Assembly: GCA_020184695.1 (NCBI GenBank)
Contig: JAANOX010000224.1
Coordinates: 1 to 64,000 of the forward strand
Direction: 5' to 3'
Source: Histomonas meleagridis 2922-C6/04-290x
Taxonomy: Eukaryota; Protista; Parabasalia
DNA length: 64,000 nt
The position numbers and the translations under genes were made by a program. Shown here piece by piece: positions 4,562 to 63,884 of this stretch. Position 1 is the first letter of the stretch. Each line of letters starts with the position of its first letter. Under the pieces are notes generated by a model. That model did no database searches. It was not told where the DNA came from and worked only from the letters and a program-made list of their open reading frames with translations.

Positions 4562-5911
4562 ATGAATTACAAGCGAACTGCAAAAAAGAAATTTTTTCAT
4601 GAAGAAATCAGAGCCATAACAAATCATGAAGAAACAAATGAATCAGATCTTCCAGCATACAGAGAAGATGATTTAGCATTTACCAAAATTCAACTCCCAA
4701 TTTTGGTCAATAACATTATTAATAGAAATGATGTCGAAAATACAATTACATATCTTTCAAAACTCACACAGCAAAAGTCATTTGCGTTAAATGATTTACT
4801 AATAGATGAAAATTTTTTAGCTCCATTATCAGAAATAATTACAAATTCCGATTATCCAGCTGAAATATCGGTTTATTTAATAATTTTTCTTCATAATATA
4901 TGGTATTATTCAAAACTTAATACACCAAATGTTTTTCATCCTAATTTAATTATTGCTTTCACAACTTTCTACTCATCTGAAAATCCTGTCATATTATCAT
5001 ATGCATACCATGCAACACTCATTTTAATTGATCATAGCTATAACTTTATACCTCTTCTAATTGAAAATGGAATAATTGATTCAATCGGTTGCTTTATTTC
5101 AAATAACGAAAATGACAAAGACTCTTTTCGGCCCATTCATATTATTTATGATTTTTACAAATACTTTGGCGAAAACAACGAAATTCTTGATCCATTAATA
5201 CCTTATTTTGCTAAATTCATTACAAGTCAACATGTTCCCCTTCGGGAAATGTCTACGCTTTGTATGGAACATGTCTTGAAATCGGAGCGATCTTTTCAAT
5301 TTGCAATGACAATACCAGATATACTCGAATTTTTTAAAAACGCCCAACTCCTTCGCCTCTTGTCTCAATCTGAGTCACTCTACCAGTGTTATATTTTTCT
5401 CTTTAAACATGGTGTTAATGAAATTTTTGTTGACACTTTTTTTGATGAGTTGCGAGAAACCGTTAAAAAATCCATCGATGAGAACAATCTGATTTACAGC
5501 ATTTATGAGTTCATTCGGCTAATTCTGCCTAATTATTGGAATGTTCTTAAGAACTATGGTTTTATTGATTTTTTCCTTGAAACTACACAAGACAGATGTA
5601 CTGAGCTGAAACTTGAATTCATTTCTTGTCTTGCAACATATGCATTGTCAGTTGATAATGCCGAGTTATTAGAATTTGGACAAAAAGGCGGATTTGAAGC
5701 TATAATCGAAATTATATATATCGGATATTCTCCTTATTTTTCGGTTTTCTTGAAAAGTTTGATTCGATTCTTGGCACTTGATAATTCTTTCGTTGAATTA
5801 GGAAATAATATTCAAATTCAAGATGCAATGGAGAGTATTGATACGGATGAACAGGAAATTCAAGAGTTGAAACAAAATATTTTGTCATATTATGTGGAAT
5901 CAGAAGAATAG
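4562..5911 (+). CDS. Hypothetical alpha-solenoid (ARM-like) protein, 449 aa
   Basis: Long open frame with helical composition; no recognisable motif. Confidence 0.7.
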   Translation: MNYKRTAKKKFFHEEIRAITNHEETNESDLPAYREDDLAFTKIQLPILVNNIINRNDVENTITYLSKLTQQKSFALNDLLIDENFLAPLSEIITNSDYPAEISVYLIIFLHNIWYYSKLNTPNVFHPNLIIAFTTFYSSENPVILSYAYHATLILIDHSYNFIPLLIENGIIDSIGCFISNNENDKDSFRPIHIIYDFYKYFGENNEILDPLIPYFAKFITSQHVPLREMSTLCMEHVLKSERSFQFAMTIPDILEFFKNAQLLRLLSQSESLYQCYIFLFKHGVNEIFVDTFFDELRETVKKSIDENNLIYSIYEFIRLILPNYWNVLKNYGFIDFFLETTQDRCTELKLEFISCLATYALSVDNAELLEFGQKGGFEAIIEIIYIGYSPYFSVFLKSLIRFLALDNSFVELGNNIQIQDAMESIDTDEQEIQELKQNILSYYVESEE

Positions 5912-6750
5912 AAAAAATCACTCGAAGATAATTCGTTTTCGTTTGTTAATAAAAATTCATCTGATGACATTTGTGTGACTTTCTTTAATGAAAAAGATGA
6001 TGTCGTTGATCGTATAGACATTTGTTCTTGATTTGAAATTTCTGAAAGTGAATCAAATTTCAACTTAGAAGTATATAACATATCAGAGCTATTCATGGAA
6101 CTATCAGAAATAACTTCCATTTGTGATTCTTCGATGAGATCTGGCTTTTGAATTTTTCTGAAAGATTGATTTTTATGTGGTTTGTTTTGATTGTGCTGCT
6201 TTTTCCTTGGTTCTTTTGTGATTTGATGAGGGTTTATTCCTTTGTTTCGAATTGATTTCCATTTTAGAAATATTTCAGAATGTTTTCTTTCAATATGTTT
6301 ATCAAGATATTTGATACTGCTAAAAGATCTGGAACAAATTGGACATTTTTCAATTTGTTTTAATTGGTTCTTTAAAAGATTTTGGGATTTTTGATTATAT
6401 TTTTTAAGTGAATGTATTTTTTGTTTTGCTAAAGAAAGCTCTGATTCAGATGTTGTTAATTTATTTAACAGACGCTTTTGAACATTGCTCATTAAAATTA
6501 ATGAAACCTGGAGAATTCGACAAAGTTTTCGAGATAACGGATGTGATAAAATCGATGAATCAGAATTAGAGAGATCTAGTCCAACAAAGTTTGTTAAAAA
6601 TGGTTGGATTCTGGTTATATCACCAGATTTTAAAATCAAATCTAGATCAATTGAAGATACAACAGACCAATCAATTAGCTCATCAAAGTTTGTGGTAGGA
6701 GTCTGACCTATTGAGACTGGTATAATTGGTAGAAGAACAGATCCCCACAT
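5890..6750 (-). CDS. DZIP1-like protein (Dzip-like N domain + C2H2 zinc finger)
   Basis: IDWSVVSSIDLDLILKSGDITRIQPFL..KLCRILQ, then a coiled coil and CPICSRSFSSIKYLDKHIERKH. Confidence 0.75.
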   Translation of the reverse strand: MWGSVLLPIIPVSIGQTPTTNFDELIDWSVVSSIDLDLILKSGDITRIQPFLTNFVGLDLSNSDSSILSHPLSRKLCRILQVSLILMSNVQKRLLNKLTTSESELSLAKQKIHSLKKYNQKSQNLLKNQLKQIEKCPICSRSFSSIKYLDKHIERKHSEIFLKWKSIRNKGINPHQITKEPRKKQHNQNKPHKNQSFRKIQKPDLIEESQMEVISDSSMNSSDMLYTSKLKFDSLSEISNQEQMSIRSTTSSFSLKKVTQMSSDEFLLTNENELSSSDFFYSSDST

Positions 6751-7259: not shown

Positions 7260-8657
7260 CCTAAACCATCGTCATAAAATGAATTCAAGACAGAAGCATT
7301 TGAAACATTCAGCCCAAGTACTCTTACAATAACTTTTTTAGAAGATTTGGAACAAAGCTCTAATTATAAAGATCAAATAAAACATATTATAATTGAGAAC
7401 GGTGTTGAAAATATTACATTTAATGATTTTAACTTTTTTACCTCTTTAATAACAATAGCAATTGGTAATTCAGTACGTTCAATTGAATATAGCCCTTTTG
7501 TGAGGCTTGTAAACCTTGAAATGATTAATGTATCTGAAGAAAACTTATTATTCAAGTGATACTAATGGAATTCTTTATGAAAAACATTTTAAATCATTGT
7601 TTTTTGTCCATTTGCAATGCCAATTAACTCTTTTATCATTCCAAATTCGGTAAATTCAATTGGTGATTCTGCATTTTATTCATGTAAAACATTAACAATT
7701 ATTACAATTACATGTTCAGTTACGTTAATTGGAACTGATGTATTTTGTCAATGAGATAATTTAGAAATACTCATCATTAACGAAGGTGTAAAAGCAATTG
7801 GAAATTTTTCATTTTACTATTGTTCATCATTAGCAAATATTACGGTTCCAAATTCAGTTTCTTCAATTGGAATGTCTGCATTTCGTGAATGCGATAAATT
7901 AAAAGCAATTATCATTGGTCAAGGTGTAACAGAAATTCAAAATTCTGAAATCTTGTTCATCATTAACAAATATTGCAATTCCGGATTCAGTAACTTCAAT
8001 TGGAGTTGAAGCATTTCGTGGATGCAATGATTTGGAAACAGTTATCATTGATGCATATAATGGAACAACATTTGGAGGACTTAATGTGTCAAAGGATCAT
8101 CAGTTGGAAAATGCGAACAATATCTCTGGCCGACGCACGCATTCGCGAAAACAAATACATTCACTAAGTCAAATGCATTCACTAAATCAAATGCATTCAC
8201 TGCATCATATATTTTGAGTGGAACATTTTCATATACATTTACTTTATATATAACTCAATCGTTAAAATTTCATTCATTTATATCGAATACAATCTTTAAT
8301 ACGATAATTAATTCATTTTCCACATATATTTATACTGAGTTTCTTTTTTATGGATACACAGTTCATAGATACTCCACATATTATTTGTATTATTCAAATT
8401 TCTTTACTATTCCACAAATTGATTCACAAATAAATAATAAATTACCAATGAATTTGTTAATTGGTATAATTTGTTGTTCAGTTATTGTGATTCTTTTAAT
8501 TATTGGAATTATTATTTTTGTTATTCATAAAAGTAAAAAATTAAATACAAAAGAAATGTCATGTGAATCATCAGATAATTTAAATCAAAGTGAACAATTA
8601 AATAAAAATTTCGATAAATATATTGGAAATGATAATGATCAATGGATAAAAGAATAA
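7260..8657 (+). pseudogene. BspA-type leucine-rich-repeat surface protein, disrupted
   Basis: Fragments IPNSVNSIGDSAFYSC, VPNSVSSIGMSAFREC and IPDSVTSIGVEAFRGC, an FTKSNAFT stalk repeat and a C-terminal TM helix (LLIGIICCSVIVILLIIGIIIFVI), with several stops and frameshifts. Confidence 0.75.
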
Positions 8658-22203: not shown

Positions 22204-22857
22204 TAGAAATTATGTTTGAAAATAAAAATTTAATTCTGAAGTTGTTTAGTGTGAAATTAAATGAAAATTTGTATAAAATTTTATACAAAGGCTAAAAATT
22301 ATTAGGAATAATTTTCATGAATATATAACTAATTTGTAATTTTATCATTTTTGGTTTAAGAAGAATTGGAAATACTTTTATAATGGGAGTTATAAAAAAA
22401 TCAACTCAATGATTTGAACTGAATCAGGGAAAATAGAAATAGAAAAATTACTTTTCAAAAAAGAAATTAATATTACACAAAAAATATTTATAATTTTATA
22501 TTAGTTTTAAGAAGTTATTTAAAACGGTATTAATGGCTGGTTATTAAAAATAAAAAAGATATTAATTTATTCATTTTAACAGTTGTTAATTTTGAATATT
22601 AATAAAAACACTATAATTACTAATATAAAGTTTATAATAGGCTATTTTGAGTATGTGTTTGCACAAAAATAATGTTGATAAGATTTAGATAAAACATGCT
22701 TTTATTTCGTTGATTTCGTATTTCGATAAACTAAGCTCCTCTTGGTCAAAAAATCAATAAATTATTTATATTTACATGAATTCCTGTTTGCTTCGGCTTT
22801 TAATGAAAAGTGACATGTTTACAAAAAAGTTCTTATTTCAAAAATTTGCATTTCGAA

Positions 22858-25800
22858 ATGCAACTTTTACGGAAACTCGAGCAAATCATATTCAACATAA
22901 ATGAAAAAAATTTTTTACTATCAGTTGATAATACAATACATTGTTTTGACAAAAATTTCCCATACACATTCAATGCTTCCGTATGTTTTTTAGTTTTTTC
23001 TGCTTTTTCTTCACAAAACAATTTAAGTGATGTATACTTAAATTATTTACATTTAATTCAAACAAAGGAAGAAGAAATAAATAATAACATCCCAAAAATC
23101 TTTGATATTTTTTCGTTTCAAATCAATACTATCTTCCAAACTAAAACACAAGAAATATGTTATCTTATTGAAAAAATGATCGTACAAAAATTAGCTCGGC
23201 CAAATATTGATAAAATCACTACAAAATATTTTGCACATTATAAATCAGAAAGATTAAGTAAACTTAAACAAAGTTTTGATTTATTTGAAGATACTTTTTT
23301 AAATAATTATGAAGAACTATCAAAGAATGATTGGGAACTTCATAAAAAGTTAATTAAAGAAGGAGTTAATCCGAATGAAATTGCAAAAATAATTCGAAAT
23401 GATGAAATAGAAAAACTTCAAGAAATATCATCACAATCAAACTTTTATTTTGATCAAACAATTGAACCATCACTTTATGAAAGATGTTCTTTTATTAATG
23501 AAAAGAATGTTACATTAATTGATTATGCAGCATTTTTTGGATCAATTAAATGTTTTAAATATTTACTTATGAATGGTGGAAATTTATCAAATACAGGTAA
23601 ATATGCAATTGCTGGTGGAAATGAAGAAATTATTCATTTATGTGAACAAAATCATTCATCATTTAAAGATGCATATGTAACCGCAATTGAATTTCATCGA
23701 AATGATATCTTTAAATATATTTATGAGAATAAATTCGAAAAACATGATAAAAATTATGTGGATTTGGGATGCATTTGTATTAAAAATGGGAATTATGAGA
23801 TTTTAACATTTTTAGAAAAAGAAGGAATGAAAGTTAATCAAAATATTATTGATGAATCAGCAAGAATTGGAAACTTATATCTTTTTAAATATTTTTTACA
23901 AAATGAGCAAATTCCAATCGATACTTTATTTTTTTCTATAGAATCAAATAACCATGAACTTGTCAAATTTATTATTGATCAAGAAGCAATTGATATTAAT
24001 GCTTATGCTATTTATTCGTTTTATTTAAGATTTACTTTAATAAAACAATGTTTCAAAATAATATTTGGAAATTATTTAAGTTATTTGAAACAGCATTTAT
24101 GAAAGCATCTTATTATGGTCATATAGAAATAGTCAAATTGCTTTTAAAACAGAAAGGAATTGATGTTAATGATGAAGATATTTATTTGTTTTATTTAATA
24201 TTTATTTTAATAATTTTGTATTTCAAAATAATATTTGGAAATTATTTAACTTATTTAAAACAGCACTTATAAAAGCATCTGAAAATGGTCATACAGAAAC
24301 AGTTAAATTACTTCTTGAACAAGAAGGAATTGATATTAATGCTAAAAATATTTATTTATTTTATATAGAATTTATTTTAATAATTTAATATTTCAAAATA
24401 ATATTTGGAAATTATATAAAATATTTTGGACAGCACTTATGATTGCATCTCAAAATGGTCATACAGAAATAGTTAAATTACTTCTTGAACAAGAAGGAAT
24501 TAATATTAATGAGAAAAAAAATATTTATTTGTTTTATTTAATATTTATTTTAATAATTTGATATTTCAAAATAATATTTGGAAATTATTTTAATTATTTA
24601 ATGCTGCACTTATTTTAGCATCTAAAAGTGGCCATATAGAAATAGTTAAATTACTTCTTGAACAAAAAGGAATTGATATTAATGCTAAAAACATTTATTT
24701 GTTTTATTTGGATTTTATTTTAATAATTTTCTATTTCAAAATAATATTTGGGAATCATTTAATTTATTTGATACAGCAATTATTTTAGCATCTAAATATG
24801 ACCATATAGAAATAATTAAATTACTTCTTGAACAAGAAGGAATTGATATTAATGCTAAAGATAAAATTTATTTATTTTAATTTATATTTATTTTAATAAT
24901 TTGATTTTTCAAAATAATATTTGGAAATTATTTAAATTATTTAATACAGCACTTATATATTCATCTAAAAATGGTCATACAGAAATAGTTAAATTACTTC
25001 TTGAACAAGAAGGAATTGATATTAATGTTAAAGATATTTATTTGTCTCATTTAAAATTTATTTTAATAATTTGATATTTCAAAATAATATTTGGAAATTA
25101 TTTAAATTATTTAAAACAGCACTTATATTAGCATCTGAAAATGGTAACAACGAAATCGTTAAATTACTTCTTGATCAAGAAGGAATCGATGTTAATGCTA
25201 AAGATATATATTTATTTTTTTAAAAATTTATCATAATTAATTGAATTTTATAAAAAATATTTGGGAAATATTCCAATAATTTAATACAGCACTTATTTTG
25301 GTGGCTAAAAATAGAATAGTTAAAAATGAAATCATCAAATTATTACTTCAACATAATCAAATCGATATCAACGCCAAAGAAGATGATTAACCTCATTATT
25401 CAAAATTTATTTTGATAATTTTATGTTTAAAAACAAAATTTGAAATTTATTTTTATTTTTTGAAACCGCACTTATATACGCATCTAGATATGGCAAGACA
25501 GAAATAGTTAAAATACTTCTTGAACATGAAGGAAATGACCTCAATGCTAAAGATAATGTCTATTAATTTTCTCTATTATTTGTTGAAATATTATGATATT
25601 TAATAATAATATTTGGAATTTTTGCATGTCTTTTAGAACAGCACTTATATGGGCATCTTTTAATGATCATATAGATATAGTTAAATTACTTCTCCAACAA
25701 AAAGGAATTGATATTAATGCAAAGAGTGATTTTTTCTTCTATCTGGAGTTTATTTATGAAATTTTCTATATCAAATTAATATTTGGGATTTATACTAATT

Positions 25801-26043
25801 ATTTCAAACAGCACTTATGTTGGCAACTCGTAGTGAACGAGTAGATGTAGTTAAATTACTTCTTGAACAAAAAGCAATCGATATTAATCTTAAAAATACT
25901 TATTAATCTCTTTTGAAGTTAATTTTAATAACATGATTTTTCTATTTTAAAATTGGTATTTATTGGAATTATTCGAAACAGCACTCGATATAGCTGTTGA
26001 AAATGGTCAAGATGAAATTGTAAAATTGCTTCAACAAAAATAA
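22858..26043 (+). CDS. DUF3447-type ankyrin protein, locus A (~789 aa after removing 48 17-nt spacers)
   Basis: N-terminal IIRNDEIEKLQE..LIDYAAFFGSIKCFKYL domain, then 12 arrays each followed by a stop-free in-frame TAL.. segment (11 of 30-33 codons, last 21 codons). TAA at 26041-26043. Confidence 0.85.
24010..25977 (+). repeat. 12 ankyrin linker arrays, each exactly 80 nt = 4 x (17-nt spacer + 1 codon)
   Basis: Arrays start at 24010, 24180, 24350, 24523, 24693, 24866, 25036, 25206, 25385, 25558, 25728 and 25898; each was counted at 80 nt. Confidence 0.92.
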
Positions 26044-26506
26044 ACCATTGATGATATCTTAAAAAAGAAATAGATTACTTCAGATCAATAGCATGTTAAA
26101 GAATAAAAATTAATTTAGTACTAAATCAATAATTTGTGAGTAAACTCTATAAATAACAATAGTTTAATTAGTTTTTTCGACTTCTGTGTACTGGATTTTT
26201 AAGTTTAATAAAATCGATATATATCAAATCATTAATAGATGTCAAAAGGATCTACATAAAATATTTTGGATATCAAACAATAGAATTAATTATTAAAAAT
26301 GGCAATCACTAATTAATGTGTGTTTCTAAGTTTCACATGAAAAAAAATCAATTTTTTTCAAAAAAATAAATTGAAAAATCCATTTTATTGATTTTGTAAA
26401 TTAAAAAAAAAATTATATGAACAAAATCAAAAATATATTAGCAAACCCTATTTAAATAATTACAGATAATGTTTGGAATAAATTTTTTCATATTATAAAA
26501 CCATTT

Positions 26507-36752: not shown

Positions 36753-38198
36753 ATGGGAATAGTTCCAAGCCAAAACATTGAAGAAAATTTCAAACAAGGC
36801 ACTGGAATAAAAGAAAGTCAGGATATAATTCCATTCAAAGAAAGTATTCGAAACTTACAACTGCTTGAAAAGTATATTTTTTCATTGAATGAAAACAATA
36901 TTCAAGAAACATCTGAATCAACGATGAAATTATTCAATAAAAGTTTTCCATATACATGGCACCTTGTAATTTGTCGATTGATATTCGCTTCTTGTATATC
37001 ACAAGATAAAACATTAACATATTTTTAGATTATTTAAAACTAATTGATAAAAAAGAAGAAGAAATGTCTGATCAAAGTTTTGACAGAATTCTTAATGTAT
37101 TAACACAATTCATTCTTACATTAACGTCACGCGAATCTGATTACATTCTAATGAAAATGTATGAACAAAACATAGTTAATCAAAGCATTATACAAAGAAA
37201 AAAAATCAATTATTTTGCACATTTCTTATCTGATAAAACAATCAATATAATAAAATACAAAAAAAATAATATTATTTTTAGTGCAGTTCTACAACGTGTT
37301 AAAGAAAATTATTTGGAATTGCATAAGCAATTAATTAAAGAAGGAGTTAATTCAAATGAAATCTCAAAAATAATTCGAAATGATGAAATAGAAAAACTTC
37401 AAGAAATATCATCGCAAGCAAATTTTAATTTTAATCAAAAAGTTGAACCATCACTTTATGAAAGATGTTCTTTTATTAATCAAGAAAATGTTTCGTTAAT
37501 TGATTATGCAGCATTTTTTGGATGAGTTAAATGTTTTAAATATTTACTTATGAATGGTTCTAAAATAGATAACACTGGTAAATATGCAATTGCAGGTGGA
37601 AATCTTGAAATTATTCATTTATGTCAGCAAAGTTGTGCAACATTTAAAGATACATATGAAACAACAATTCAATTTCATCAAAATGATGCTTTTAATTATC
37701 TCTATGAAAACAAAATTGAAGAAATTAATAATTTAACTTATTTAGGAATTAGATGTATTAAATATGATAATTATGAAATCTTTTCATTTTTGGAAAATGA
37801 GGGAATGGAAATAGATATGATCATTATTAACGAAACAATAAGAATTGGAAACATATTCTTTGCTAATTATTTTCTTGAAGGAAAAAATTATCCAAAAAAT
37901 AGTTTTTTTTTTAGTTTGAATTCAAGAAATGTCGAATTTATACGATATTTAATTGAGAAAAAGGATTACTTCTTGAACAAAAGGGAATTAATGTTAATGC
38001 TAAGGATAATTATTTATTTTATTTAGTATTGATTTTAATAATTTTATATTACAAAATAATATTTGGAAATTATTTAAATTATTTAAAACAGCACTTATTA
38101 AAGCAAGTGAAAACGGTCATACAGAAATTGTTAAGTTGCTTCTTGAACAAGAAGGAACTAATGATGACAAGAAAAGTGAAAATAGTACTGAAGAATAA
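36753..38198 (+). pseudogene. DUF3447-type ankyrin gene, locus B, disrupted; retains one 80-nt linker array (38008-38087)
   Basis: T-run frameshift near 37025, TGA at 37523 where paralogs have Ser (TCA/TCG), and a frameshifting internal deletion near 37965. The final repeat decodes as KD-SYGK-TALIKASENGH and ends at TAA 38196-38198. Confidence 0.8.
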
Positions 38199-59962: not shown

Positions 59963-62900
59963 GTGGGGGGAAATCAAAGTCAAGCGATTATCAAATACAA
60001 TGAAAACCTTCAAATATTGCAAGCTATTGAGAGAATTATTTTCGATTTAAATGAGGAAAATATTGATCAATCAGTCGAATCTTCTTTTCAATACTTTTCT
60101 CAAAAATTTCCAATTTCATTCCTTCATATTATTAGCAGAATTATTTATTCATATTTTGTTTCAAAAGGATTTGAAAAATTGTGTATCAAATATTTACAGA
60201 AAGCAGAAATAAAATCAAATAATACCTTAATTAATGTTGTTACTCAATTTTTATTATCAATTAATAACGAAGAATCAAATTATCTTCTTGAAAAAATGAT
60301 TGAAAGCAAATTAATAGAACCAAAAATTATTCAAAATAAAAATAAACCTTTTTATATACATTATGTTTCAGAAGAAGAATTCATAAAACTGCAATCTCAA
60401 AGGCTTATATTCAAAAATGAAAATAATTTCAAAGATCTTTCTGAAAATTTTGAACTTCATAAGAAATATGTTAAGAATGGGCACAATCCAAATAAAATTG
60501 CAACAATAATTCGTAATGATGAAGTCGAAAAACTTCAAGAAATATCATCACAAACAAATTTTAATTTTAATCAAATAATTGAACCATCACTTTATGAAAG
60601 ACATTCATTTATTAACAAACCAAATGTTACATTCATTGATTATGCAGCATTTTTTTCTTCGGTTAAATGTTTTAAATATTTACTTATGAATGGAGCAAAT
60701 GTAATAAACACAGGTAAATATGCAGTTGCAGGTGGAAATGAAGAAATCATTCATTTATGTGAACAAAATCATTCGACATTTGAAGATGATTATGAAACAG
60801 CAATTATGTTTCATCGAAATAATATCTTTAAATATATTTATGAAAATAAAATTAATCCTGATAATAATTTAGAAGAATTAGGGAAAGAATGTATTTTACA
60901 TGATAATTTTAATCTTCTTTCATTTTTAAAAGAAGAAGGAATGAATATCAATAAGATTCATATCATTAATTCTATTAAAACAGGAAATATTTTTATTTTT
61001 TTTATATTTCCTCGGAAATAATAAAATTTCACTAGATTTTTTAGAGATTTCAGAGATTTCTATTAAGGAAGAATTTCTTGACTACCTTATTAAACATAAA
61101 TATATTAATTTAAAGAGAAGTGTTTGAAAATTTTATTGAAATTTTATTAAAACGATTTGATATTTTAAAATATGATTTAAATTTTTATTATAAAATTTAA
61201 TACAGCATTTCATATAGCAGTTAGAAATAATAATATAGAAATAGTAAAATTCCTTTTAGATAAAGGAATTGATGTTAATGCAATAAATATTCATTTGAAT
61301 TTTTTGAAATATGTTTTAATAATTTGGAATATGTTTTAATAATTTGAAACAGCACTTTATATAGCAGCTAAAAATAATAATATAGAAATAGTAAAATTAC
61401 TTTTAGATAAAGGAATTGATGTTAATGCAAAAACTATTCATTTGACTGATTTAAAATATGTTTTAATAATTTTATGTATGTTTTAATAATTTGTAATACG
61501 TTTTAATAATTTGTAATACGTTTTAATAATTTGTAATACGTTTTAATAATTTGGAATATTTTTTAATAATTTAAAATATGTTTTAATAATTTTGGATATG
61601 TTTTAATAATTTAGAATATGTTTTAATAATTTGAAACAGCACTTCATATAGCAGTTAAAAATAATAATATAGAAATAGTAAAATTACTTTTAGATAAAGG
61701 AATTGATGTTAATGCAAAAACTATTCATTTGAATAATTTGGAATATGTTATAATAATTTTATATATGTTTTAATAATTTGAAACAGCACTTCATATAGCA
61801 GTTAAAAATAATAATATAGAAATAGTAAAATTACTTTTAGAACAAAAAGGAATTGATGTTAATGCAAAAGATATTCATTTGAATAATTTGGAATATGTTT
61901 TAATAATTTGAAATATGTTTTAATAATTTGAAACAGCACTTCATATAGCAGTTAAAAATAATAATATAGAAATAGTAAAATTACTTTTAGACAAAGAAAT
62001 TGATGTTAATGCAAAAATTATTCATTTGAATAATTTAAAATATGTTTTAATAATTTTGGATATGTTTTAATAATTTGAAATATGTTTTAATAATTTGTAA
62101 TACATTTTAATAATTTGAAATTTGTTTTAATAATTTTATATATATTTTAATAATTTGGAATATTTTTTAATAATTTAGAATATGTTTTAATAATTTGATA
62201 TATGTTTTAATAATTTTATATATGTTTTAATAATCTTATATATGTTTTAATAATTTGGAATATGTTTTAATATTTTTGGATATGTTTTAATGATTTGTAA
62301 TATGTTTTAATAATTTGGAATATGTTTTAATATTTTTGGATATGTTTTAATAATTTAAAATATGTTTTAATAATTTAAAATATGTTTTAATATTTTTATA
62401 TGTGTTTTAATAATTTAAAATATGTTTTAATAATTTAGAATATGTTTTAATAATTTGAAATATGTTTTAATAATTTGAAACAGCACTTCATATAGCAGTT
62501 AGAAATAATAATATAGGAATAGTAAAATTACTTTTAGATAAAGGAATTGATGTTAATGCAAAACTATTCATTTGAATAATTTTGGATATGTTATAATAAT
62601 TTTATATATGTTTTAATAATTTGAAACAGCACTTCATATAGCAGTTAAAAATAATAATATAGAAATAGTAAAATTACTTTTAGATAAAGAAGGAATTGAT
62701 GTTAATACAAAAGATATTCATTTGAATAATTTGAAATATATTTTAATTATTTTGGATATGTTTTAATAATTTTATATATGTTTTAATAATTTGAAACAGC
62801 ACTTCATATAGCAGTTAAAAATAATAATATAGAAATAGTAAAATTACTTTTAGAACAAAAAGGAATTGATGTTAATGCAAAAGATATTCATTTGAATAAT

Positions 62901-63184
62901 TTGGAATATGTTATAATAATTTTATATATGTTTTAATAATTTGAAACAGCACTTCATATAGCAGTTAAAAATAATAATATAGAAATAGTAAAATTACTTT
63001 TAGATAAAGAAGGAATTGATGTTAATACAAAAGATATTCATTTGAATAATTTGAAATATATTTTAATTATTTTGGATATGTTTTAATAATTTGGAATACG
63101 TTTTAATAATATTTTACTGCGACTCAAATTGCACATCAAACAGGTTACACAGAAATAGGAAATTTACTTCATGAAAAAAAATAA
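59963..63184 (+). CDS. DUF3447-type ankyrin protein, locus C, with ten 20-nt-unit linker arrays
   Basis: DUF3447-like N-terminus (begins GTG-GGG-GGA, no ATG). One extra T in the run 60996-61003 and one missing A near 62563 (possible homopolymer errors). Nine near-identical TA(L/F).IA..NNNI.IVK segments, then a terminal TATQIAHQTG..EKK-TAA at 63182-63184. Confidence 0.7.
61122..63115 (+). repeat. Ten arrays of 20-nt units (consensus ATATGTTTTAATAATTT-NNN) of 4,3,10,3,3,23,3,4,3,4 units between ankyrin segments
   Basis: Arrays: 61122-61201, 61289-61348, 61436-61635, 61723-61782, 61873-61932, 62020-62479, 62566-62625, 62716-62795, 62886-62945, 63036-63115. Confidence 0.93.
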
Positions 63185-63812: not shown

Positions 63813-63884
63813 TGGAAATATGGGGGATTGAACCCCAGGCCTCCACTATGCTAAAGTGGCGCTCTCCCACTGAGCTATACTCCC
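63813..63884 (-). tRNA. tRNA-Ala (anticodon AGC)
   Basis: GGGAGTA TAGCTCAGTGGGAGAGC G CCACT-TTAGCAT-AGTGG AGGCC TGGGG-TTCAATC-CCCCA TATTTCC A: full cloverleaf with the G3:U70 Ala identity pair. Confidence 0.97.

Follow-up and report, generated by a model that had tools for sequence, protein, structure and literature searches.

Apparent one-codon exons between 17-nucleotide spacers in an ankyrin-repeat gene family of Histomonas meleagridis

The window analysed here, a stretch of 64,000 nucleotides (nt) from contig JAANOX010000224.1 of Histomonas meleagridis 2922-C6/04-290x, carries three members of a parabasalid-specific DUF3447-ankyrin family, which we call genes 1, 2 and 3 (Table 1). In gene 1, the main subject of this work, each of the ankyrin repeats is interrupted by an array in which 17-nt spacers alternate with single triplets. 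The window has a GC content of 29%, and the neighbours of gene 1, which include ABC transporters, a GCN1-like HEAT protein, a proteasome subunit and kinases, are uninterrupted. The published genome of the species has a GC content of 28.7% and few predicted introns (PMC8529796).

The N-terminal 384 amino acids (aa) of gene 1 (22858-24009) match the Pfam families DUF3447 (PF11929, 9e-10) and Ank_2 (1.5e-8), as well as Ank_4. Homologues are found in H. meleagridis, Tritrichomonas and gut metagenomes, those with a species name being 'caskin'-like proteins of H. meleagridis and proteins of Tritrichomonas. All 12 inserts that follow are exactly 80 nt long, the exons between them measure 90-99 nt and consist of whole codons, and every insert consists of four 20-nt units, in each of which an AT-rich spacer of 17 nt is followed by one triplet, with 48 spacers in total. 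Read without interruption from 22858, the frame meets a stop at 24102. Joining exons and triplets by script yields a coding sequence of 2370 nt, with 789 aa, no internal stop and a TAA at 26041-26043. Tandem repeats of 33-34 residues with a D-x-x-G-x-T-A/P-L loop appear only once the spacers are removed, and 10 of the 12 repeats then match ..G.T[AP][LIF]. The third loop position is glycine in 11 of the 12 repeats, encoded by GGA, GGG and GGT. A preliminary description, made from the DNA letters and their open reading frames (ORFs), had proposed this division into 20-nt units, the twelve tetrapeptides, the 11 glycines in three codons, the lack of stop triplets and an ORF of about 789 aa from the ATG at 22858 to the TAA at 26043 in place of a raw frame ending at 24102; our recount agrees on every point. 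The 17 + 3 anatomy of gene 1 is more than chance.

Table 1. Features of the ankyrin family members in the window
Feature	Positions	Strand	Description
Gene 1	22858-26043	+	DUF3447-ankyrin family, 12 ankyrin repeats
Gene 1, exon 1	22858-24009	+	N-terminal DUF3447/ankyrin domain (ORF, Pfam, homologues)
Gene 1, repeat region	24010-25977	+	12 ankyrin repeats, 80-nt insert before each 90-99-nt exon
Gene 1, insert 1	24010-24089	+	Triplets KNGE
Gene 1, insert 2	24180-24259	+	Triplets NCGK
Gene 1, insert 3	24350-24429	+	Triplets RNGW
Gene 1, insert 4	24523-24602	+	Triplets NDGN
Gene 1, insert 5	24693-24772	+	Triplets GSGD
Gene 1, insert 6	24866-24945	+	Triplets YDGN
Gene 1, insert 7	25036-25115	+	Triplets KDGK
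Gene 1, insert 8	25206-25285	+	Triplets KEGN
Gene 1, insert 9	25385-25464	+	Triplets KYEE
Gene 1, insert 10	25558-25637	+	Triplets IDGR
Gene 1, insert 11	25728-25807	+	Triplets GSGQ
Gene 1, insert 12	25898-25977	+	Triplets EDGE
Putative one-codon exon GAA	25975-25977	+	Fourth triplet of insert 12; start point of exact-gene RNA contig match
Gene 1, last exon	25978-26043	+	Includes TAA stop; matched by RNA contigs X4 record 24 and X5 record 32
Gene 2, paralogue	59963-63184	+	17 + 3 arrays of 3, 4, 10 or 23 units, spacer ATATGTTTTAATAATTT
Gene 3, third family member	36755-38198	+	One array at 38008-38087, AGT TAT GGA AAA = SYGK

A stop-free ORF is also obtained by keeping 12 contiguous nucleotides at several other offsets within the insert, and ORF restoration alone is weak evidence for the 4 x (17 + 3) parse. 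That parse is preferred because the glycine pattern, the relatives and the RNA contigs select it. Stop codons are missing from the 48 triplets of gene 1, where 3.1 are expected from column composition, and from the 60 triplets of gene 2 (61122-63115), where 11.4 are expected on the same basis (P about 3e-6); for the two genes combined this amounts to 0 of 108 triplets against about 14 expected. Among 22 fully parsed four-residue loops, taken from gene 1, gene 3 and three relatives introduced below (L001, L004 and L032), position 3 is glycine in 20 and position 2 is aspartate or asparagine in 11. Variation concentrates in columns 18-20 of the 20-nt unit: per-site divergence across repeats 1-7 of gene 1 is 0.41 in triplets, 0.08 in spacers, 0.15 in exons and 0.18 at exon third positions, and in gene 2 it is 0.56, 0.06 and 0.03 for triplets, spacers and exons, respectively. 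Two other parses were considered and rejected. With a single 68-nt intron plus 12 contiguous coding nucleotides, glycine falls third in at most 3 of the 12 repeats at the sampled offsets (every 4 nt), and the loose ends of RNA contigs described below, in which GGA, AAA and ACA are adjacent, also speak against it. Shifting the boundaries to create GT-AG ends fails because the flanking triplets vary, so that any shift alters the mRNA.

RNA evidence comes from four sequencing runs of the same species labelled as probable RNA; contigs of three of these and of one DNA run were aligned to gene 1. Of the sampled 31-mers of 22800-26100, the four RNA runs hold a share of 0.48-0.50 and the two best DNA runs 0.81-0.84, and for the repeat region alone the shares are 0.38-0.41 and 0.79-0.81; a transcript made of exons only would be expected to hold 0.356 of the repeat-region words and 0.58-0.60 of those of 22800-26100. 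Joints that skip 80 or 79 nt, from 24349/24350 to 24430, are present in 17, 23 and 10 contigs of the three RNA runs (50 in total) and in no DNA contig. For 13 of the 15 best-supported joints listed there is no DNA contig, and just one DNA contig shows a related joint, which skips 83 nt. A paralogue deletion of 278 nt, from 23676 to 23955, acts as a control: it is seen in all four runs, and DNA-encoded differences are therefore visible in the DNA run.

Where the letters between the two sides of an RNA joint are given, they sum to 12 in frame and replace the 80 found in DNA; one such joint, A plus ATAGAGGAAAT, reads AAT AGA GGA AAT. The loose ends before 24430 read ...AAT AAT GGA AAA in all three RNA runs and spacer sequence in the DNA run, and GGA and AAA, which lie 17 nt apart in DNA, are adjacent in the RNA contigs (GGA-AAA-ACA). 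Two RNA runs each provide a contig of gene 1 itself, matching 25975-26100 with no mismatch. Their match sets in with the opening base of the final triplet, at 25975 and not at 25978, and the 57-58 letters upstream of that point lie on nothing contiguous in the genome; 57 of them would correspond to 9 nt of triplets and the 48 nt that exon 11 has from 25850 on, a position at which a DNA contig starts as well. The spacers are absent from most RNA contigs and present in DNA contigs, as observed at the level of the family and at one boundary of the exact gene. A search of a protein collection with the exon-9 piece for RNA-derived peptides of gene 1 returned no candidate.

The same arrangement recurs in relatives outside the window. 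Three gut-metagenome contigs with N-terminal domains 45-58% identical (L001, L004 and L032) show a 170-nt period of 90 + 4 x (17 + 3); their spacers have diverged, the 17 + 3 pattern is kept, and the triplets read RAGY, HFGN, HEGR, YDGK, YNGM, KSGK, KDGL and SDGF. For the first insert of L004 (1353-1444), four spacers and a single exon of 6 nt (TGT GGA; loop GYCGK) give a better parse than 4 x (17 + 3), and micro-exons are therefore not always 3 nt long. L004 and another contig, L005, both from metagenomes and belonging to a relative of Histomonas, also carry a DDE_Tnp_IS1595 transposase ORF (L004:4380-5279, L005:4622-5521), which follows the ankyrin gene at a distance of about 2.3 kb.

L002 has three units per array, as does one repeat of the H. 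meleagridis paralogue L003 (WSYJ01000186.1, assembly GCA_020186115.1); the first loop codon then forms part of the upstream exon, and exactly one 17-nt spacer has been lost. L003 is further split at 5210-6485 by an inserted element of about 1.27 kb, which is bounded by terminal inverted repeats and contains a mariner/Tc1-like ORF. The annotated model of L003 ends inside this insertion, upstream of the repeats; the repeats downstream contain stops and spacer insertions or deletions (14 nt instead of 17), lesions as would be expected of a decaying copy.

Among 25 more distant loci from two JGI metagenomes, the ankyrin cores are spaced by 99 nt (50 times), 116 nt (16 times), 102, 119 or 133 nt, and the spacings that break the frame thus all equal a multiple of 3 plus 17 or 34. 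Repeats in L016, L018, L023 and L027-L030 (Ga0074193_*, Ga0209639_*; GC 30-34%) are spaced by 116 nt (99 + 17), a figure that gives the length of the element and, from DNA alone, not its exact place within the loop. Elements of 17 and 22 nt also appear to be present in TRFO_07820 of Tritrichomonas foetus (MLAK01000938.1, L034:3716-4095), where loop A reads ...SR / 17 nt / GGT / 22 nt / TGG-TPI and loop B reads ...NNEG / 22 nt / TGT-TPL. Each of the three elements begins with GTTTT, and a final AG is missing from all of them. The annotated protein appears to run on across the pair in loop A (39 nt, in frame) and to end after the 22-nt element of loop B, and a further 128 codons with ankyrin loops follow downstream in a shifted frame, unannotated. 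A search for a transcript-derived version of TRFO_07820 found only the genomic model.

Gene 2 contains the longest arrays. Its spacer, ATATGTTTTAATAATTT, is nearly invariant over 60 triplets arrayed within 61122-63115, its loops span 3 to 23 codons, and its triplets diverge 10-15 times as much as the flanking exon and spacer. The array of 23 units at 62020-62479 encodes KWEVEYGRDYYGWVGWKKYKREE. The triplets draw on a small set of codons (GAA, GGA, TAT, TGG, AAA, GTA, AGA and a few others), and none of the 60 contains a C. Three successive GTA units share one variant spacer, which indicates tandem duplication of the 20-bp unit in this gene. Its frame breaks at about 61000, in a T8 run within the N-terminal domain, and at about 62563, where AAAACT at an exon end is shortened to AAACT; both breaks fall in homopolymer runs and could be errors of long-read assembly or real lesions.

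Gene 3 has an in-frame TGA at 37523-37525, where its paralogues have serine, and frameshifts in a T run near 37020 and again near 37960, with its four-unit array still intact. The TGA and the frameshifts mean that it is probably a pseudogene or a carrier of assembly errors. Reading the break near 37020 as a 17-nt element was tried and rejected, a 1-nt change in the T run being the better fit. A window-wide scan for pairs of long ORFs that could be bridged by 17 nt found none besides the ankyrin genes. Elsewhere in the window, a BspA-like leucine-rich-repeat region (7690-8657), which contains a tandem repeat of 138 nt, is distributed across three overlapping frames and may be frameshifted or mis-assembled, and a tRNA-Ala (AGC) at 63813-63884 on the minus strand is the sole Rfam match at gathering score.

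The spacers themselves offer few recognisable signals. Their consensus is 5'-RTTT...ATTT-3', with R1, T2, T3, T4, A14 (position -4), T15, T16 and T17 conserved across diverged spacers, and the A at position 14 is the only branch-like feature. In the window, 84 of 108 spacers start with AT. Position 1 is mostly G in the relatives (20 of 36 spacers in L004 and L032 together), and the 3' ends in all relatives are TTT, CTT, TAT or similar, none of them AG. The spacers of gene 1 all lie in phase 0. The intron motif of Trichomonas vaginalis type, GTAYGT...ACTAAC..AG, was sought across the whole window and not found. RNAalifold, run on 16 diverged inserts with their flanks, returned 0 pairs and 0 kcal/mol, which argues against recognition through a bulge-helix-bulge or stem-loop, and conserved RNA structure was accordingly dropped as a candidate signal; the conserved pairing of structure-guided splicing systems (tRNA bulge-helix-bulge, Ire1 stem-loops, euglenid nonconventional introns) is missing here. 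Set beside parabasalid spliceosomal introns, the spacers lack the 3' AG and the fused CTAA branch site and share the absence from RNA.

We consider it probable, at roughly 78%, that gene 1 is an expressed DUF3447-ankyrin gene from whose transcript the 17-nt spacers are cut out, yielding a canonical ankyrin protein of 789 aa. The hairpin-loop tetrapeptide of each repeat, xxGx, just before T-A-L, would then be encoded as four separate one-codon exons, and the AT-rich intervening sequences, whose length is invariant where their sequence has diverged, would be lost from the transcript and so be mini-introns in the operational sense. Precise removal of 17-nt segments that leaves single-codon exons had already been suggested in the preliminary description. 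It is supported by the RNA joints at family level, the boundary at 25975 and the 31-mer shares, and independently by comparison, namely the length of 17 across diverged spacers, the precise losses of single spacers and the retained glycine.

Several observations weigh against this interpretation. That the RNA runs are RNA is itself a guess. The family is hugely multicopy and the joints listed stem largely from its paralogues, and no single RNA contig of gene 1 was seen to cross an entire insert and carry the four triplets of that gene. In one RNA run there is an unspliced contig of gene 1 (25744-25878, depth 40), at a depth similar to that of the spliced 3' contig. In three RNA runs the contigs cease to match at 24003, which is 6 nt short of 24009, where exon 1 is predicted to end, and carry 6, 6 and 15 further non-matching letters; a DNA contig stops at the same point, and an allelic variant plus a branch in the assembly graph may account for the break. 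Outside the arrays, frame breaks and a stop are found in genes 2 and 3. Finally, the window spacers end in AG in 0 of 108 cases, contain CTAA in 1 of 108 and start with GT in 7 of 108.

The frame breaks and the multicopy nature of the family would also suit an account in which a 20-bp minisatellite has invaded the interrupted genes, which are dead copies, and the loops seen in RNA stem from uninterrupted paralogues. The paralogous origin of most RNA joints, the unspliced contig in one RNA run, and the frameshifts, stop or transposon of genes 2 and 3 and L003 speak for such an account, yet we regard it as very unlikely. Dead copies would not be expected to keep 108 triplets free of stops where about 14 are expected, nor to retain glycine and a length of 17 in relatives of 45-58% identity despite diverged spacers, and the skip-80/79 joints, like 13 of the 15 listed, have no counterpart among DNA contigs. 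Moreover, all four family members examined in H. meleagridis (three in the window plus L003) are interrupted, the annotated family models found for this species measure about 400-430 aa, with that of L003 ending before the repeats, and the exact-gene RNA contigs leave the genome at a triplet boundary.

The absence of the spacers from RNA makes two further accounts unlikely, and both seem to us highly improbable. Were the spacers to stay in the mRNA and the ribosome to hop over them, decoding one codon between hops (programmed translational bypassing), the fixed spacer length, the weak sequence signals and the unspliced sequence in one RNA run would fit; but the gaps are missing from RNA contigs, which carry the joined form, the share of 31-mers in the RNA runs comes close to that expected of exons alone, and 48 consecutive hops would be required. 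Matched take-off and landing codons are also lacking, in that the triplets do not match the spacer ends: spacers end in TTT, and only 1 of 108 triplets is TTT. Were the spacers instead removed from DNA in some nuclei or molecules, with RNA copied from the processed DNA (programmed DNA elimination), the precision of the excision and the short, AT-rich units would be natural. The joined form should then occur in DNA, where no contig has the skip-80/79 joints that dozens of RNA contigs carry and a single contig has one skip-83 joint; the DNA runs hold 0.79-0.84 of the words, spacers included, and TA-type boundaries are absent. Nuclear dimorphism is not known from parabasalids, which also counts against elimination.

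If the spacers are excised from RNA, as we favour, the enzyme is a separate question. The excision may be a splicing reaction that measures length, probably derived from the spliceosomal type and working without a 3' AG or a CTAA branch motif; spliceosomal descent is suggested because the 5' end is mostly GT in the relatives and in T. foetus. We favour this derived spliceosomal mode at roughly even odds over an endonuclease-ligase route. In the latter, an endonuclease and an RNA ligase of the tRNA or Ire1/RtcB type would measure 17 nt, a variant that we hold to be possible and rather less likely. It would sit well with the lack of AG and of a CTAA branch motif, with 5' ends that are mostly AT in the H. 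meleagridis window, with a strictly invariant length while sequence diverges, and with 3-nt exons, which should leave almost no room for spliceosomal contacts on the exon side. It is countered by the absence of any conserved bulge-helix-bulge or stem-loop in the 16 inserts, by the mostly GT or GTTTT 5' ends of the relatives and T. foetus, which look like a degenerate 5' splice site, and by narrow length classes, which are typical of minimal spliceosomal introns in Stentor and Bigelowiella, as cited in PMC12316389.

The 20-bp unit of spacer plus codon may in addition behave as a DNA module that is duplicated or lost, so that loops would grow, shrink and reshuffle one codon at a time. A fuller version, in which a dedicated length-measuring, non-GT-AG excision, whether a strongly derived form of spliceosomal splicing or one independent of the spliceosome, decodes the one-codon arrays and the 20-bp cassettes are duplicated, lost, recombined and perhaps alternatively included to produce target-binding loops of hypervariable length and sequence in a large ankyrin family, is tentative, and we would lean against it as a whole. 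Hypervariable loops rich in glycine, tyrosine and tryptophan, built from single-codon cassettes, suggest binding surfaces that evolve codon by codon.

Neither 17-nt intervening sequences nor tandem one-codon exons are described in the literature searched, as far as its accessible text extends, including genome and intron papers on Histomonas, T. vaginalis, T. foetus and Tritrichomonas musculus, and the initial assertion that no described mechanism fits stands within that literature. Intervening sequences removed from RNA and micro-exons are kinds of element already known; that the excision machinery or the cassette behaviour is new in kind is nevertheless a serious possibility. If confirmed by complementary DNA, this would be the densest packing of exons and introns known to us, with 4 introns and 4 exons within 80 nt and as many as 23 within 460 nt, and the spacers would be the shortest intervening sequences reported in Metamonada (the previous minimum being 23 nt, in T. 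vaginalis), with neither an AG nor a recognisable branch motif. It would also make testable the question of the minimum that a splicing machine needs, and whether length alone can define an intron. There are practical consequences as well. The family members found in H. meleagridis are annotated at about 400-430 aa, compared with 789 aa for the joined gene 1, in which the uninterrupted reading frame ends at the first spacer. In T. foetus, at least one model seems to run across such elements or to end in them. The annotation of a large ankyrin family in these veterinary parasites is therefore probably wrong.

Known systems resemble the Histomonas arrays in part. Translational bypassing, as in gene 60 of phage T4 and the byp elements of Magnusiomyces mitochondria, likewise involves short non-coding gaps in an ORF that need to be skipped; there the gap is kept in the mRNA between matched take-off and landing codons, whereas Histomonas RNA is free of the gaps and the codons are unmatched. 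The internal eliminated sequences of ciliates are also numerous, short, AT-rich interruptions of coding sequence that are removed precisely. They are removed from DNA, are bounded by TA and measure 26 nt or longer in Paramecium. Unlike them, the Histomonas spacers leave joints, of the skip-80/79 type, in RNA runs and not in the DNA run.

Closer in ancestry are the spliceosomal introns of parabasalids, for which PMC12316389 gives GT...AG ends, an (A/T)CTAA branch site joined directly to the 3' end and a length of at least 23 nt. The type B introns of T. vaginalis and Trichomonas stableri (23-25 nt; same source) share with the spacers the phylum, the very short, T-rich sequence, the narrow length class, the removal from RNA, the intron-poor genome and an occurrence in repeat-protein genes; they are GT...AG with a fused (T/A)CTAA, number at most 1-2 per gene and are at least 23 nt long. 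The Histomonas spacers, by contrast, are 17 nt long, never end in AG (0/108), mostly start with AT (84/108), number up to 48 per gene and enclose 3-nt exons. Minimal introns of 15-16 nt in Stentor coeruleus and 18-21 nt in the nucleomorph of Bigelowiella natans are cited in PMC12316389. Their length, like that of the spacers, is fixed within about 1 nt and lies near the presumed physical minimum of the spliceosome. Both kinds have canonical GT-AG ends and are spread over most genes. The Histomonas spacers differ in having non-canonical ends and uninterrupted neighbour genes, and stand in tandem in one loop of one protein family. Micro-exons of 1-3 nt in animals and plants (PMC8831610, PMC8042270) are exons of about single-codon size that are spliced into mRNA, as proposed here; those are isolated, with long canonical introns around them, whereas in Histomonas up to 23 follow one another at a spacing of 20 nt.

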